The position numbers and the translations under genes are program-made. A stretch of 64,000 nucleotides of DNA from Paragordius varius. Taxonomy: Eukaryota; Animalia; Nematomorpha. The stretch is taken from assembly GCA_964247055.1 (NCBI GenBank), contig OZ176052.1:1178001-1242000 (forward strand), in the 5' to 3' direction. Under the pieces are notes generated by a model. That model saw nothing but the letters and a program-made list of their open reading frames with translations, was not told the DNA's origin and ran no database searches. Of the stretch, positions 30,340 to 44,900 are shown piece by piece. Position 1 is the first letter of the stretch. The number at the start of each line of letters is the position of its first letter.

Positions 30340-32013
30340 ATGGGAAAATACTTTTGCATAATTGTTATCATGATAATATCGGGAACATTGCAAACTTTAT
30401 CAATCAAATGGGCTGACATGCTAGAAGCTCCTGGAAATCCGCAATCTTATTTACGAGCTGAATCGCATCAGTTTAATCATCCATTATTTCAGACCTTGCT
30501 AATGTTTATAGGGGAAACGTTGTGCCTCCTTGCATACCATATTAGATTGATTTGGTTTAATATATGTCGGCGCTACAATGCGAGAAAAAGGAAAAATTGT
30601 TACTTAGAGCTAGATATACAAAACGAACATATAGGGTAAAAACTCATCTTTTTTATAGAGGTGGGAGTTATATAAAAATTTGCATTTTTCAGTGGAAATT
30701 CAGCCGTTTTTTAAATATCGTATATTTCAAAAAAATAACTCTTATTAACCATACAGAGACGTAGCTTGAATTTTTGGCGCCTGGTGCACGAATCTGGGAT
30801 GCCCCCTCCGTGATATTCATGTTTTATATAAAATAATACCTTTTAGACACCTTTTCAATATAAATTAAAAAATTTAAAACCGGCGCCCTCACAAGTATGA
30901 CACCCGGTACATCAGCCCCCCTTTCCACCCACCTAGCTACGCCTCTGAACCCATAATGTTATCATTGCAACGATAACAATCTTTAATCAAAAGCCTATGG
31001 TCCATTCATAATATTCTATATTAAACGGGATTTCATATATATCATTATGTAGCTATCCCAGTTTCGATCAGATTTGCAAACTTTGGTTTCCTGCCCTATG
31101 TGATGCATTTTCGACCACTGTTATGTATTGTGCTCTAAACTGGACACACGCCGCTAGTTTCCAGATGTTACGAGGAAGTGTCATAATTTTTACGGGTTTT
31201 ATGTCAAAATATTTCCTTAATAAGTCACTCAATACTCATCAATGGGTTGGTATAGCTATCATTAGCCTTGGAACTGTATTTGTTGGTTTTAGTGATGCTA
31301 CATACAATAATAACTCAGTAAATTTTGAATCTGGTAGAATGGCGTTGTTAGCTGATGCCCTTATAATCTTAACCCAAATCATCGTAGCTTTTCAAGTGGT
31401 TTGGGAAGAAAGATATATGGCCAACACTCAAATTGTAGCACATCAACAAGACACTATAGACCATAATATTAATATAGATATTCAACGAAAATTAACTATT
31501 TCCGAATTGCTAGTTATCGGCTGGGAGGGCATATTTGGAACGGTCATTATGACATTTGTTTTAACAATTTTGGCTGCTTTAAAAGCCTTTGTAGGAAATA
31601 ATATGGACAATAATTTTATATATCCTTCTCACGTCGCAAATAATACTGTAACATTTCAAAATTTTTTGGAATTTGAAGAATTACCCGATGCCTTATATCA
31701 ACTCTTTTATTCTGATTTGCTTAAAATTGCCCTTTTCCTTATGGTATTGAGTGTTCCAATTTTTAATACTTCTGGACTCATAGTTACCAGGGACATGAGT
31801 TCGACCAATAGAATGGTTATAGATTCCCTCCGAATCTTTTTAGTGTGGGCATGTTCGTTAGCATTTAATTGGCAACGATTCAATACATTTCAATTGATTG
31901 GATGTTTGATCATTGTATGTGGCATTTTGCATTTTCAAAACACAACAACTATCAATATTAAAAAAAGTTTGGTTAGCCAAATTTCTATACAAATGTTTAC
32001 ATTAAAACGATAA
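30340..32013 (+). CDS. SLC35F6: Solute carrier family 35 member F6-like (DMT superfamily); join(30340..30635,31053..32013), 418 aa
   Basis: IKWAD..FNHPLFQTLLMFIGETLCL, PALCD..MYCALNWTHAASFQMLRGSVIIFTG, VWEE, GWEGIFG and SSTNRMVIDSLR; the phase-2 intron is consistent. Confidence 0.9.
30754..30947. mobile_element. hAT-like MITE (194 bp) in the SLC35F6 intron
   Basis: TIR CAGAGACGTAGCT / AGCTACGCCTCTG; 8-bp flanks TAACCATA and AACCCATA (6/8 match); GC-rich interior. Confidence 0.65.
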
Positions 32014-33066: not shown

Positions 33067-36000
33067 ATGTACGCTTCTTTGATTTACAATGCCATAGCCT
33101 TAATTGTTATATTCGGGTTTGGGAGTTTTAATGCCATACAAGGTAAAAAAATGTGTTTTCTCAATATTTTTTTTGATTCAGTATTTGATATATACTTATT
33201 TATTTTTTTGGTTAGTTTCAAAATATATGCTGGAAAAATATCTGAGCAGGACGACCGAATTCACGGAAAATAACCAACCAGACTCATTTTTAGATATTCA
33301 ATCTATAGCTGGTATATCTTTAAATTATTAAGCGAATATAGTAATTAAATTTATAGAAACAAAGTAATTGACAATTTTTTTTTCTAAATTGTATATTTAT
33401 TAACCCTGAACTTATTTTGAGTTGTAAAAGAAAAAACCATGAGATTTACATAAGAATTGGTGCAAAAAGATGGTCAATTTCATAACAAAAAATTTTTTAT
33501 TTCTTGAGATGGCTTATATTTTATTTATTGACGACCTAATTTTTGAAATATTGGGAAAAAATTAAAATTGGGCGAAAAGTGAAAATTAAGGATAATTTAG
33601 GATAATGAAAAAATAAATAAATTGAAATATAAAATTTAACAACATATTATTAAAAATTTACAATTAAATTTTCTAAAATCATATAATCTTTTCAAATCAA
33701 TCGTGTTTTTCCTTTAATTTATTCACATTAAAATTTGAAATTATACGGACAAAACGTATAAATATAAAGACAAATATTTTTTAAAAGACAGCCACATTTT
33801 TTAAATCTCGAATTTTTATTTATAATAAAAATTGCAAAGTACGGAATGGAGATGTATATTCGCAATCAAATCAACATTTTATAATTGTAAATAAATAATT
33901 TATATGGAATATATATATATAAAAAAGTATGGTTTCTTTTTGTCATTATATTATTAAGTTATATAATTTCAGTTTACTGTACACAAAATATTTTTTATGA
34001 AACTATAATAAAATAATTTTTTAATTGGATATCAATCAAAAATCCGTACACCCAGTAAAAATATGTATTAAACAAACCTGTTACTGGGATTTGCACGAAT
34101 TGTTGGTTGATATTCCATTACTTGTAATTCCTCTTTTGTATTAAATACACACTTTTTAATTCCCGCTCATGTAAGATCCCAAAACAAAACAGTAAATTTA
34201 TGATACATTCACATACCAGATCACAAAAAAATAAAAAATAAAATTAATACATTATTCATTTTATTTTGATATATAAGTAAGATTTTAATAGTAAGTTTGG
34301 TTGGTAAATAATAAAATAAATTTATAGTTATATAAAAATAAATATTTTAAAGGATAAATATGTAGAAAAAGTCTTTCCATAGTATACCATTTACAATTCA
34401 AATTTACCCTTGCACATTAAAATTTATTTTTTTAAAAATATAAAAAAATATAGTTAATTCTTATCTTACAAACACATTTTAGGGTGAATTTGTTGGGTGA
34501 ATTTAAAATGATGGTATATTAAAAGAGTTTCTATATCGTTTTCATCATGCCTAAAAAAGGATGATGAACGCTTCAACGAAATTTTGCTAAAAATTAAATT
34601 TTTGTAAAATGTATGCATTTAAAAAATATTTTTTTTGATATCAAAGTTTAGCATATAATTGAAAATTTTATTACATTTCGGCAGTTTTGCGATTATATTA
34701 AAGGAACTACGTTTAAGAAGAGTAAAAAACTAGGGACTTTTGGAGCCCACATCTAAAAATTAAAATCATATGTTTTGCTTTTTATAAGTAGTTTATGATA
34801 TAATTTATTTTTTTGGAATGAAGCATTTATCTTTTATTAAAAAATTTTATTACAATCAATGTGCTCAAATATCTCCATTTTTTGATATGGAACACTTAGC
34901 GCAAAAGTATAAATAACTTTATATATCACTCGTACCCAAAACTAAAAGCATCATGAAATTCCTGATACATTTTTCTATAGAATATATATTTTCTTCAACT
35001 GTGTATTGGAAATAATTGTAAAAAGTTTTTTTGTACACAGTGTAACAAATTTTACACTTCACAATCAAAATCATATTAGTTAATGTATATATGGTTTTCT
35101 TAATTTAGTATTTTATGTTTATAATTTATTTTTTATGTCATTGTTTTATAAGAGTAGAGGATAAATCATAATTATACGCAAGTTAACCTTGCTCGCATTT
35201 GGATGTGAAAAAAATTATCAGCTAAATTGTAAATACGCGAAATTATCAAAAAACGAGTGCGGATACACAAAAAATATATTGCATATAAATGATTTTGATG
35301 TCTCGTTTACACATAATAAAATTAAGATATGTTTTTGAAAGAATTCTCGTAATAAAATTTTGATCTATCTATCAAAAACGCTCTAGACAATGGTAAAATT
35401 AAAGTACGCTATATTTATAAAAAAAGGCGTGTAATATGCAAAAATCAGATTTTTAGAGAAAATCAAACATGTTTCATATTAAATTTCCCTAAGAGAGGTT
35501 TCATGCGAAATTTAATAAAGTATCATTTTATAAACGCATGGTTTTTGCACAATTCCTCAATTTTTATTAGTTATAAAAATATGAAGTTAACCAGTTCGGT
35601 GCTTGAGATTGAGAATAAATTATAAACACTTTTGGAATAAGCTTATAAAAATTATCAAAAGAATCTTTTAAATTACTAAAAGTTAATTGATATTAAAAGA
35701 CATGTTTATTAATGTCTTAGGTTCCGAACAGGTTAATTCCATGTTTTAAATACAAAAAAAGATAGTTTGTAGATACTATTAAATAGAAACTTTTCCTCTT
35801 TAAAACCTCCATAGCATATTGTTACGAAAAAAATTACTTCTAGTTTATTCTGTAATTTTAGATGCTTTACTTAATTATGTCTAAAATTATTGATGCAATA
35901 ATTAATCTAAGTATTAACCATTTCGAATTATCAATTAAAATTTTTATACCAAAACTATTTAATAACAGCAGACTGCATAAAATTAGTTATTTTATTTTCC

Positions 36001-38568
36001 TTATATGCAAAGTAATTCTCTTTTTTGGATTCTAAAAGGTGGTGTTCCCCTGAGATAAAATAATAGGAAAAACTAAATTTGCCCTAACTTTAGCACACTA
36101 ATAATATATATATACATTAATTGTGCTATTAAGGGCGAATAGAATATGTATAGTAAAAAATGCTAGATCTTTGCTTGTAGTATTTAAAATACTATCAACT
36201 TTGGCTAAATAAGCGGAGATATATTAGCAAATTATCTGGTTAAACTTTTATTCTTCAATGCAAAATTTTGTTAATAAATATCCTGAATTGTGTTTTGGAA
36301 GCTATGTAATATATTATATTATATAGTATAAGCTCCAAAAACATTTTAGAGATACATTGAAACGAGGTATTGTCCTTAAATCAAAGCCGGCGATGAAAAT
36401 AATATATAGATGCTAGGTTAAAAAATACTTTAATAATGAGATTTAACTATCAAAAGCGATTGCCATAAAATATGATATAAATTTATTAAATGTGAGCCCT
36501 ATTCTAAAGGCAAAACGACCAAAATAATATTTTATCGGCATGGTACATTTAATTCCGGTAGGTGTCATTTAAATGGCATAAAGTAAATAATTACTAGAAT
36601 ATAAAAATATAATAGTCTTTTATAAAAGTAAAATTTCTGGAAACTATATGCATCAAATTAAATTCTAATATACTTTTTCCTTTATTCGAATATTCATTGA
36701 TAAAAAATAATTTATAATGCTATAATTTTTTTCCTATTTTTAAGCCATCTATCAAAATTAAAACAAAATTTTAATTTTGGCTTTTTTGGCGAAAAAAATT
36801 TGATATTGTGAAGCCCAAAGCTAAAGCCTACTGAAAATCTATGTGCACATTTGTCTAAGCATATATTCCGCATTTTCAGCCTTATTTTGTATTCTGATAT
36901 TATAGCAGGGCATGAACCCAGTTTTATTCTTCTTTTTTTCTGTATTTTAGGAAAAGTTATATCCATATAGTATTTAAAAAATAAATAAATCTTATATCTA
37001 TATATATATATATAAATTTAGGTGTTTCATCTATCAACAATGTCTCATCCCCACTTTCTACGATAGTTTTCGATTTTGATGTCAATGGGATTAATTTAAA
37101 GAAAGTTAAAAAAGCCGAACTTGTAATTGCGTTGGAGTCAACAATGGCAGGAAATGAATTTAACATTAATGAAAAATCTTTCCAAAAATTACTAATAGCC
37201 AACGTTAAAGTTGAGATTGATCGTAATGCTTTATATGTGGGTTCGAAAGATAACTTAGGGCAAAACGTAATAATACACAAAATTAGAGATGAAGTTTTGA
37301 ATCAATGTGATAAAAAAACGTCCATGCAAGTTTCCGCCAAATGTGATAATGCCACGCATTATTTAATATTACCAATCAAAGCTTTAACGCATACATCAAT
37401 TAACAATGGAACAAAAATTACATTAAAGATTGAAACTAAAAATACCCTGATTAGACAACTTTTCCGGAATAGCATATATTTGTTTGCTTATACTTCTGAA
37501 TCCCCAGTTAAGTTAGTTTTATCTTATAGAAATTAACAAACCATGTATTGTATGTCATTTTTAACCAATTCTTACTCAATTTCATATGGATAATATTTGT
37601 TTAGAATGGAAGAGTCGTTATCGAAACCCCAATTGTTGAAAAAAAAATTAGCAAGACATGTGCAAAAACGATCAGCCGAAAGATCCAATACATTTGCAAA
37701 GTTTTGTAAAATATCAAAATATACGATTGACATTGGAGAAATTTTAACCAATTTGATTGCGCCAGCGGGTGACGTTACAATAAAACATTGTACAGGTAAT
37801 ATATATATATAAGTAGATAAAGTGAAAAAATATTTTTAACAAATTTTCTTTTGAAAACAGTATTAGTTGTATTCTTTAGCATTGCATGTTAACCGTCTAA
37901 AAAATACACGATTGAATGGTCATAGGTAGTCATCAATACAAATATAATATAATATCTGATACATAAACAAAAAATAGAGTGACCGGTTTAAATAGAGTCT
38001 ATTCTATATATATATATATATATATATCGCGCGAATTTGTTAAATTTTAAAATGCTAATAAAAACAACTGATATATAAAAACAACTGATTTATATAACAA
38101 CTGAGGTTAATAAACACAACTGATTTATATAACAAATGATTAATAAAATCAACTGATAACCTATAACAATTAATTTAAGTTTTATAACACCTTTTAAATC
38201 AAAACTATTACATGATAAACGTAATAATGAAAGTTTTTTGATCGGTTATGTTTATGACAAGTTGCATACGCATTCAATCCAACTAAAATATATATATACA
38301 TATATAAACTCATGATATTATATTTATTTTAGGTGTTTGTGGTGCCACACTGTTGGATATGCTGGGACAACATTATAATTTTGCGGCCCAATTAAAAACT
38401 CGATATTTGTTGGGACAAGGTAGAAAAAATGAAAAAATTCCAAGTACCGATCTTCAATTGGCATGTGCTCCGAAAGCTATGCAGAAAGCATCTATATTAT
38501 ATATGGAAGACAATGTTCCACAATTGCGAGTTTTTGATTTTGGTGCAACTGAATGTAGCTGTTTCTAA
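33067..38568 (+). CDS. Divergent TGF-beta-superfamily ligand; join(33067..33142,33216..33311,37022..37511,37605..37795,38333..38568), 362 aa
   Basis: Hydrophobic signal peptide; prodomain motifs SKYMLEKY and VFDFDV..VKKAELVI; basic cleavage site RHVQKR|S; mature domain FC..LIAP..HCTGVC..ACAP..SILY..ECSCF. Splice phases 1, 1, 2, 1 are all consistent. Confidence 0.88.
33730..33979. mobile_element. MITE family B copy (nested)
   Basis: TGAAATTATACGGACAAAACGT left half; TTTACTG-TA right end. Confidence 0.65.
34385..34516. mobile_element. MITE family A, internally deleted copy
   Basis: TATACCATTTACAATTCAAATTTACCC left end; GGGTGAATTT..ATGGTATA right end. Confidence 0.7.
38061..38158 (+). repeat. 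Minisatellite of 16-19 bp units built on CAACTG
   Basis: CAACTG at 38065, 38082, 38098, 38117 and 38150; CAAATG at 38133. Confidence 0.8.
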
Positions 38569-41973: not shown

Positions 41974-44900
41974 TTGGTTGGTTGGTTATCCTAAGTCGTA
42001 AATGACTTTTTGGATATAGTTTTCCCTATTTCTTTCCACTTTCTTCTATCTTTTACCGCTACATTGAGATCGTTCAATGTCATTTTAGTCTCCTCTTTTA
42101 TCATAGCCAACCACCTCATCGGTGGTCGGCCTCGTTTCCTTTGTCCTTCTACCTTCCCAAACATTGTATCTTTCTCTAGATAATTCGATCGCATGACATG
42201 ACCAAAATATGTTAACTTTCTTTTTAGAATTATCTCCAGGATGTTTGTTTTAGGCTTTATTTCTGTAGTTAGATTTCCATTATTAATTTAATTCTTACAG
42301 GTGTATCCTAACATCCTACGCCAGCAGCTTCTTTCGAACGCCATTAGCCTTTCTTTGAGCTCTCACAACCATATGTGGTGACGGGGAGAACAAAACAGTA
42401 GCGTTATCTTTTTTTAGTTTCAACTCCTACTATTTTGTTTTCCAAATCTTTATTAGTTTGATCATCGCTTCTTTACCCAATTTCTTTTCTGATGTCAGGA
42501 GTTGAAGTCCCATCCTAGGAAATTATAGTACCCAAAAACCTTAACTGTTTACTTCTATTTTCACTCCTTCTATAATAAATAGGCTTTTCTCCAGTACATA
42601 ATATTTTGGTTTTGTTAGGGTTAAGCATAAGACCATAACTCAAATTTTCCTTTCGAATCTCTTCAATCAATTCCTTTGAATCATTTACATTTTCAGTTAT
42701 AAGAGTGGTATCGTCTGCAAACCTTATTGATTGTTCTCCCTCCTATTCTTACTTTAATATTTTTATCCAATTTTCTCATTATCATTTCTGTTCTCATATT
42801 GAACAGATAAGGGGATAAGCAACACCCTTGTCTGACTCCTCTTAAGATAGGTAGTTCTTCTGTGTCCCCCGCTGATGTTCTTATAATCGCTCTTTGTTTT
42901 ACATAGAAAGAGCTAATCAATTTAATTAAGTGGGACGATACCCCTAATAACCTTAAAGTTTCCCACAAGGAGTCATAATTAATCGAATCGAAGGCTTGTC
43001 TGTAATCAATAAAACATAATTGTTTCTGAAACTCTCTAGATGTTTCCATTATTCTTCTCATGTTTGATATATGGTCTCTTGTGCTTTTTCCCTTCATAAT
43101 CCGGCTTGATTTTCTGGTATTTCTGACTGTATAATACTGTGCATCCTGTTTTGTATTATTTTCAACAAGACCTTACTAGCCTGGCTAATAAGAGCTATGT
43201 TTCGGTAGCTTTACTGGAGTACATGACCTTTTTTGTATATTGGGAGATATACAGAAGACATCCAGTTGTTTGGCCACTCACATGTTTCCCACACCTTTTG
43301 ACATAACTTGTGTAATGTTTCACAGGAATAGCTTTTATGAACTCTATTGGGATATTGTCTAATCCCATCGCTTTGTTATTAGTAATTCGTTTTAAGGCTA
43401 ATTCAACCTCCTCTTTTAGTATATCTGGATCACGTTCTTCCTCTTTTAATTGCAAAACTTTTGCTTGAGGGGCCTGATAGAGTTTTTGGGTGTATTCCAT
43501 CCATCTTTCTCGTACTTATAATTGTTTGCACAATATGGTGCCATTCTCTTTTTAATCTTTTGGGATGTTACATAAGGTTTAAGAGTCATTTGCATCAGTT
43601 TCTGGAACATTGGTTGCATTATCCTATTTTGTTATTTAATTCCACTTTCAGACATTGTTTATTAATAAATTCTTCATAATCCTTTCTTGGAAATTTTTTG
43701 TTATATAATTTAACCATTTTATTATCCCTCTAGAATTAGCTTTTCTCCGCTTTTCTGCTATCTCTAAACTCTCTGATATCCATTTATTATCTTCTGTCTT
43801 TACCCTTTGCACTTTTTCTTTTGCCACTTCATTAATAACATTTCTTATCGTTCCCCATAATTGTTCTGAGCTACATTCATTGTCCAATCTATCTAATTTA
43901 TCTTTTGTTTCTGTTCTAAAACTATTTGGAATGTTCCGAGTGTCATACCTGTATGTCTGTTTAACCTTATTTTTAATTATTTTAAGTTTGATTTTTGTTA
44001 CTAAAAGCTCATGATCGCTAAAGTAATCGCTGCTTTTGCTTGTTTTTGTATTGAGCATAGAGCTTTTTTGTGAACATATTATGTAATCGATTTGATTCTT
44101 ATATTACAGGATGGAGAGGTCCATGTGTACAACATTCGATTTTGTTGTGGGAACAATGTGTTGGTTATCATCATCTCATTTTCTTGGCAAAAATTGATCA
44201 GTGCTTCCCCAGCCTCGTTTCGTTCTCCCAATCCATATGGCCCGACTATTTGATCTACTCTACCTCTACAAACTTTGATGTTCCAATCCCCTCCTATGAT
44301 AATCATATCTCCTTTCTTTGTTTCATTCAAAACTATTTGCAACTTTGCATAAAAATCCTCTTTGTCTTCTTTGGGAGCATTTGACGTAGGAGCATAGACT
44401 GCCACTGTGTGCAAAAAAATTTTTAACGAAAAAATTTTTTTTTCATAAGATAGCCTATGACCAGCGTATTCATTTGCCGCAATTTTTTTTATTTGTGGAC
44501 CTAGTTTTTGATATATTGAGAGAAAATCAAAATCGGGCAAAAAGTGACAATTAAGGATAATTCAAAAAAATAATGATAAAATCTGAAATATTATCGTTTA
44601 TTATCATTTTAGGAGATATTTTTAATATATAAATAGCCTAAAATCATATAGTTAGGGTTTCTATAAAATTTCAAGTCAAAAGATGCTTTTCTTTTATCAC
44701 ACTTAAAAGAGAAAAAAAATTAATGAAACTATATTAAAATAATTTTTTTAATTATTTACTACCTAAACTCACTATTAAAATCTTAATATTCATATTTTAT
44801 TCAAGAAAATAAATTTTTATATCGAAATATATTGTTTTTTATTTTTGCATTTTTTTATCATCTGGTTGAGTGTATGAATTTACACTGGGTTTCTTAAATG

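Follow-up and report, generated by a model that had tools for sequence, protein, structure and literature searches.

A probable four-gene family of divergent TGF-β-like ligands, lacking the interchain cysteine and the finger-1 tryptophan pair, in the nematomorph Paragordius varius

Can a protein that lacks both the cysteine linking the two chains of a TGF-β-superfamily dimer and the two tryptophans that receive the type I receptor still be the product of an intact ligand gene? The question is raised by a locus in a 64,000-nucleotide stretch of the genome of Paragordius varius (GCA_964247055.1, contig OZ176052.1, positions 1,178,001 to 1,242,000), which we refer to as the window (G000:C3:1178001-1242000, in an assembly of 110.6 Mb). 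An earlier reading of the DNA, the original prediction, had placed a six-cysteine TGF-β ligand at window positions 37605-38568. We find that this segment contains the last two exons of a longer gene, here named M1, which occupies 33067-38568 on the forward strand. M1 is very probably a real, functional gene and a TGF-β homolog. Our preferred reading, to which we give a probability of about 0.6, is more specific, i.e., that M1 is an intact five-exon gene for a secreted preproprotein of the TGF-β superfamily, and belongs to a lineage-specific family of four genes.

The window is AT-rich, with about 25% G+C throughout, and the gene cannot be seen in any single open reading frame, as had been stated. 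M1 was reconstructed by way of a paralog (M2) recovered in a whole-genome Pfam scan, comparison with which then revealed three upstream exons. The resulting model has five exons with 1086 coding bases (362 codons), and every junction is GT-AG. Exon 1 (33067..33142) begins with the ATG at 33067 and encodes a hydrophobic segment, judged by eye to be a signal peptide; it contains 25 codons plus one base (phase 1), ends at the donor G/gtaaaa (the slash marking the exon boundary), and can be aligned with exon 1 of M2, with which it has an IVIFG core in common. Exon 2 (33216..33311; acceptor ggttag/, donor G/gtatat) encodes the N-terminal helix region of the prodomain (KYMLEKYL...) and matches exon 2 of M2 with an E-value of 0.005 by tblastn (32% identity, phases identical). 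Exon 3 (37022..37511) encodes the prodomain arm, with an F.F...AEL motif, two conserved cysteines and a CDNATHYLI motif, and is 37-41% identical to its counterparts in M2 and in the two other paralogs, M3 and M4. It is open over 163 codons; with stops making up about 9% of random codons at 25% G+C, this would occur by chance with a probability of about 1e-7 (our own arithmetic). Exon 4 (37605..37795; donor G/gtaata after 37795) encodes the end of the prodomain, the processing site, knot cysteine 1, finger 1 (DIGEILTNLIAP) and knot cysteine 2, and is 52%, 40% and 35% identical to M2, M4 and M3, respectively. Exon 5 (38333..38568; acceptor ttttag/GT before 38333) encodes knot cysteine 3, the wrist-helix region, ACAP, finger 2 and a terminal CSCF-stop.

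The span originally given thus stands as the last two exons of M1, with the junction between them corrected to 37795/38333 (G/GT). This leaves the protein unchanged, translation of 37606-37794 plus 38335-38565 yielding the sequence that had been described. Exon 3 of M1 contains an extra stretch of 13 residues. A micro-intron was considered as its source and rejected: there is no GT..AG of 21-26 bases inside the stretch, which is therefore read as loop-length variation.

The processing site, RHVQKR followed by Ser (37654-37671), lies 11 residues upstream of knot cysteine 1; its P1, P2 and P6 residues are basic, although P4 is not Arg. The mature chain that follows the KR has 119 residues, with exactly six cysteines and no tryptophan. 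The cysteines, at positions 12, 40, 44, 86, 116 and 118 of the mature chain (compared with 14, 43, 47, 79, 111 and 113 in BMP-2), have the spacing of TGF-β ligands, with CxGxC and a terminal CxC. The codon for the first is at 37705-37707 in exon 4, the CxGxC is interrupted by intron 4 (CTG/VCG, with the glycine codon split G/GT), and the chain ends in ECSCF-stop (CSCF-stop at 38554-38568, exon 5). ACAP (38461-38472, exon 5), which contains knot cysteine 4, stands at the site of the usual CCxP, and alignment to the solved structures of BMP9 and BMP6 places its alanine on the first cysteine of the CC, i.e., the interchain cysteine. The seventh cysteine of the covalently dimerized canonical ligands is not present in M1. 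Finger 1 (DIGEILTNLIAP, 37729-37764, exon 4), downstream of which is HCTG, does not contain the GW..W of the canonical type I (wrist) site, and finger 1 of M3 and M4 is likewise devoid of tryptophan. The segment from cysteine 1 to the IAP motif is two residues shorter in M1 than in BMP2/4 (fingertip 1/2), whereas the knuckle motif for activin/BMP type II receptors is kept as LIAP. The original prediction had described the six knot cysteines, the missing interchain cysteine and the loss of both finger-1 tryptophans, and each of these descriptions was borne out. A different last exon would not restore CC or W, and no alternative TGF-β-like exon is present near M1.

M1 is one of four conserved paralogs, which the original prediction had not seen. 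M2 is at C4:12.562-12.565 Mb, M3 at C5:12.035-12.037 Mb and M4 at C5:12.098-12.104 Mb; the members are spread over three chromosomes, with M3 and M4 62 kb apart. In scans of the same genome, profiles of exons 3, 4 and 5 each recovered the same four intact loci. Exon by exon, M2-M4 are 28-52% identical to M1 (E = 1.4e-24, 4.6e-18 and 6.6e-16 by exon-wise tblastn). All four have four intron positions and phases in common, and between M1 and M2 every intron position and phase is identical. Invariant across the family are QKRS, the six knot cysteines, CAP at knot cysteine 4 and P.G after finger 1. The interchain position is occupied by A in M1 (ACAP), V in M2 and M4 (VCAP) and T in M3 (TCAP), and never by cysteine. 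Finger 1 reads DIGEILTNLIAP in M1, NLQDIWHDLIAP in M2, DLQEIMTSVVAP in M3 and KLSEYIPDVIVP in M4; the second tryptophan is missing from all four members and the first from three, M2 keeping a single tryptophan. In two hhalign alignments this tryptophan of M2, and the leucine of M1, fall on the first canonical tryptophan, while the second lies opposite a gap in one alignment and opposite Asn in the other; these alignments are weak (E = 0.04-0.08) but are anchored on cysteine 1 and the (I/V)(A/V)P motif. The equivalents of Ile-Ala-Pro are LIAP in M1 and M2, VVAP in M3 and VIVP in M4. All four prodomains contain a cysteine pair with a spacing of 8-13 residues and, after it, CDNATHY(Q in M4)LI with an N-glycosylation sequon (window 37303-37380 in M1), a region that no Pfam family covers.

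Between M1 and M2, the numbers of nonsynonymous and synonymous substitutions per site (dN and dS; Nei-Gojobori method, counted per exon and then summed) were 0.52 and 1.67, respectively, a ratio of about 0.3 that is rough because dS is saturated, and that points to long-standing purifying selection. Judged by its three further intact paralogs, M1 is not a one-off, and it is very probably not a pseudogene.

The second half of the domain gives good support for homology to TGF-β, and the support from the first half is thin. Exon 5 of M1 matched the Pfam family TGF_beta (PF00019) with an E-value of 9.7e-4 (20.3 bits, profile positions 58-104 of 104), and exon 5 of three of the four members (M1, M2 and M4) gave E-values from 5e-4 to 1e-3 (20-21 bits), with matches reaching the end of the profile (104/104). 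When the four-member exon-5 profile was compared by hhalign with a mixed alignment of finger-2 halves, made up of the other ligands of the genome and BMP2 from three phyla, the probability was 77.7% (E = 1.9e-5). Against the PDB the same profile matched chains of BMP6, BMP7, BMP10, BMP3 and BMP2, the best E-value being 0.027 (BMP6). In each of the five other ligands of the genome, the family's exon-5 hidden Markov model (HMM) detected the finger-2 exon in the correct register, and the language-model look-alikes of exon 5 were all TGF_beta clusters, with a weak score of 0.82. The build of the family also matches TGF-β: a signal peptide and an F.F...AEL prodomain are followed by a dibasic site and then by a C-terminal domain that closes with CxCx-stop.

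Of the checks proposed with the original prediction, HMMER found TGF_beta on exon 5, below the cut-off; there was no Pfam match to TGFb_propeptide on exon 3 of any of the four members. The prodomains of divergent ligands are often missed by this model. Compared by hhalign with BMP2/4 prodomains, exon 3 gave a nonsignificant E-value of 0.21, with F.F..AEL placed on the same motif. In a tree of exon 5, M1-M4 formed one clade with support of 100/100, on a long branch apart from all other ligands, but the tree gave no resolved sister ligand outside the family.

Several points weigh against our reading of M1 as an intact TGF-β-superfamily gene in a family of its own. The Pfam TGF_beta scores, obtained by scanning half-domains, are below the 27-bit gathering cut-off. 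Exon 4, i.e., the finger-1 half, was not recognized by Pfam, by the Atlas search or by the PDB search, where the single exon and its profile both gave only chance matches, and its matches by hhalign were weak (E = 0.083 against BMP2/4 and 0.037 against other first halves); both of these alignments had two one-residue gaps within the GW..W stretch, and their anchors were cysteine 1 and the IAP motif. The AlphaFold model of exon 5 alone was of low confidence (predicted local distance difference test score, pLDDT, 49.8), and its layout, a helix at 16-31 and then a β hairpin, may be compatible with the wrist helix and finger 2 but is too uncertain to use. To these must be added the saturation of dS between M1 and M2, the fact that dimerization, receptor binding and signaling by M1 are all inferred, and the result that no ortholog of M1-M4 was found outside this genome, in a lineage barely represented in the databases.

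The searches behind this last result differed in reach. A word-index protein search with exon 5 gave zero candidates, and of the 1255 candidates brought up by the four-member exon-3 profile not one scored; both searches were length-limited and blind to full-length proteins. An exhaustive HMMER search of 1.84 billion representatives, for which the profile was built from exon 5 of two members, yielded a spurious bacterial repeat protein and nothing else. M3 scored 28 bits when the genome itself was scanned, and a relative as distant as M3 falls below significance in a database of 1.84 billion and would therefore be missed. The closest database homologs of the genome's own BMP2/4 ortholog are about 50-52% identical at most. 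Because relatives of BMP2/4 are also distant and M3-like relatives would go undetected, the restriction of the family to this lineage is weakly supported.

Could M1 instead be a pseudogene, i.e., a decaying relic with a leftover open frame? Its sequence is highly divergent, and M1 alone has lost the finger-1 N-glycosylation sequon that is present in M2 and M4. However, M1 has five open exons at 25% G+C, canonical splice sites and all of the family-invariant residues, and the dN/dS ratio of about 0.3 holds across a saturated divergence. The genome also contains a fifth copy that truly has decayed (C6:3024192-3024311, reverse strand): its frame is broken and, although ACVP is kept, VYG stands in place of VCG and there is no terminal CxC, so that three of the four exon-5 cysteines are gone. 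It is a picture of an unconstrained family member in the same genome, and a similar fate for M1 seems very improbable. We give still less credence to the idea that M1 encodes another cystine-knot protein, of the DAN/CTCK or glycoprotein-hormone type, that happens to share CxGxC and a terminal CxC. The finger-1 half without a significant match, and Pfam scores under the cut-off, would be as expected of such a protein, but TGF_beta was the sole family matched, in correct register to the very C-terminus; the Pfam scans gave no match to DAN, CTCK or Cys_knot at E-values up to 10; and the prodomain, dibasic site and C-terminal domain (about 115 residues, closing with CxCx-stop) are a TGF-β build.

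If M1 is a ligand, how might it work? We propose that the proprotein would be cut after QKR by a convertase of the furin/proprotein convertase type, and that the 119-residue mature chain would form a cystine knot with, by homology, the pairs C12-C86, C40-C116 and C44-C118. Mature M1 would then pair non-covalently, with itself or with a paralog, and the dimer would dock on a type II receptor of the activin/BMP type via the Ile-Ala-Pro knuckle, whose role at this receptor has been described (PMC8256043). In canonical ligands the tryptophan pair forms the hole for the Phe knob of the type I receptor (PMC8256043), a point on which the original prediction was right; M1 would have to meet the type I receptor without this knob-in-hole contact, as is thought for AMH, which implies either a lower type I affinity or a different receptor. 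Of these proposals, the non-covalent dimer is probable, while for M1 as a signaling ligand rather than an inhibitor the chances appear about even. The original prediction had suggested a non-covalent or monomeric ligand with altered receptor use, and a non-covalent dimer that uses its type I receptor differently is reasonable as a proposal. That M1-M4 represent a rewired, lineage-specific branch of TGF-β ligands, acting as non-covalent dimers that engage type I receptors without the knob-in-hole contact and co-evolved with the receptor set of the genome, is a speculative extension that we consider unlikely as a whole.

Two alternatives to a self-sufficient signaling ligand concern function. 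M1 might be a competitive antagonist, which would hold type II receptors or poison heterodimers without recruiting type I receptors, and so damp BMP/activin signaling. The retention of LIAP alongside the loss of the tryptophan pair would suit this, as would the requirement of the knob-in-hole contact for both tryptophans (PMC8256043). However, AMH, which is without the same tryptophan pair, is an agonist (PMC8256043), and four conserved paralogs with conserved processing sites of their own fit ligands at least equally well. An antagonist role, which the original prediction had raised, is therefore possible but is not favored over an agonist role, because AMH without this pair still signals; taken as the full account of M1, we consider it rather unlikely. 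Alternatively, M1 might be an obligate heterodimer subunit, inactive alone, whose non-covalent partner would be a paralog or a canonical ligand, on the model of GDF9:BMP15 or the proposed TIG-2:TIG-3 pair. The interchain cysteine is missing from all members of the family, M3 and M4 lie only 62 kb apart on C5, and modeling of the C. elegans ligands prefers TIG-3 paired with TIG-2 to TIG-3 paired with itself (PMC11210861). Against this, the members are scattered across three chromosomes, and an obligate heterodimer appears unlikely, more so than an antagonist.

The other ligands of the genome are of the BMP2/4 type (C6), the BMP5-8 type (C2) and the myostatin type (C3:10.28 Mb), with two more at C5:1.74 Mb and C3:9.48 Mb. 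The last of these (C3:9483663-9485117, reverse strand) has HCVP and thus no interchain cysteine. It resembles M1-M4 in this loss and in an intron inside the glycine codon of CxGxC, at the same position and phase, and among the canonical ligands it has the top score with the family exon-5 HMM (17.8 bits). Unlike M1, it keeps a GWVEW and scores 44 and 35 bits with Pfam TGF_beta, and the tree does not place it as the sister of M1-M4. Loss of the interchain cysteine before that of the tryptophans would be a parsimonious, though unproven, order of events. Receptor genes are present in the same genome: in six-frame scans there were Activin_recp ectodomain loci at C6:9892813-9893075 and C1:12508572-12508835, and a TGF_beta_GS locus at C1:11924518-11924574. 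Since matching was exon by exon, these counts (at least two and at least one, respectively) are lower bounds.

Two of these ligands depart from the canonical finger 1 while being otherwise canonical. The myostatin-like ligand (C3:10.2836-10.2837 Mb) reads KWDF-IIAP, with the second tryptophan replaced by Phe, and the ligand at C5:1.7361-1.7362 Mb reads NFLDPDYW-IIAP, with the first tryptophan replaced by Phe and three extra residues. The type I receptor pocket may have changed genome-wide.

Within the window, the upstream neighbor of M1 (30340-32013, forward strand) encodes a multi-pass membrane protein with similarity to EamA/nucleotide-sugar transporters (E = 1.6e-8). Downstream, at 42693-44540 on the reverse strand, are fragments of a non-LTR (long terminal repeat) retrotransposon in several broken open reading frames (RVT_1, E = 6.6e-14; endonuclease-reverse transcriptase, E = 6.6e-5). 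The 3.7-kb intron 2 of M1 contains a short repeat (34025-34141) that recurs several times around M2, in both orientations, (L012 2019-2084 and 8477-8772) and is probably a miniature inverted-repeat transposable element or a transposon relic. In intron 4, at 38055-38150, a repeat unit about 20 bases long (ACAACTGAT.TATATAA) forms an imperfect head-to-tail array, with (TA)n runs on its flanks.

Genes such as M1 are missed by standard annotation and domain scans. None of its exons reaches the Pfam cut-off, and the first domain half goes unrecognized; the number of ligands counted in phyla with little sampling is therefore probably an underestimate. Additional secreted proteins resembling growth factors are, in a lineage of parasites, also candidates for interaction with the host, and M1-M4 provide a case for asking how a TGF-β ligand dimerizes without a disulfide.

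How does the family compare with known ligands? Its best finger-2 matches among solved structures are in the BMP5-8 and BMP2/4 class, with which M1 has in common the register at the C-terminus and the motifs CAP and LY. It differs from them in a finger-2 identity of 23% (hhalign), in lacking both the CC and the tryptophan pair, in a segment between cysteines 3 and 4 that is about 10 residues longer, and in a prodomain unrecognized by Pfam.

The interchain cysteine is missing from Lefty. It is also absent from GDF3, GDF9 and BMP15, as the original prediction had stated, and from C. elegans TIG-2 and TIG-3 (PMC11210861), although such ligands are a rare subset and form, or are modeled as, stable non-covalent homo- or heterodimers (PMC11210861). 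Because this cysteine is missing, the dimers of six-cysteine ligands are non-covalent. TIG-2 and TIG-3 resemble M1 in having KCAP at the interchain site, where the family M1-M4 reads A, V or T before CAP; unlike M1, TIG-2, TIG-3, GDF9 and BMP15 keep the finger-1 W..W (published alignment).

The tryptophan pair is present in every human member of the superfamily except AMH (PMC8256043). Hart et al. describe AMH as without the conserved tryptophan pair "present in all other ligands", a loss that truncates fingertip 1/2, and note that its binding to the type I receptor must differ because the pair is missing; AMH signals nonetheless (PMC8256043). M1 is like AMH in having no finger-1 tryptophan pair and a shortened fingertip 1/2, and is additionally without the interchain cysteine. 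AMH keeps that cysteine; its prodomain is very large and consists of two domains, and AMH is not known outside the vertebrates. We found no report in the literature of a ligand without both the interchain cysteine and the tryptophan pair; the novelty of M1-M4 is this rare combination of two losses, each known singly. There is no sequence affinity to be seen between M1 and AMH, the PDB matches being BMPs, and the tryptophan loss common to the two is most likely convergent. M1-M4 would then be a second, independent natural case, beside AMH, of type I receptor recruitment without the knob-in-hole contact.

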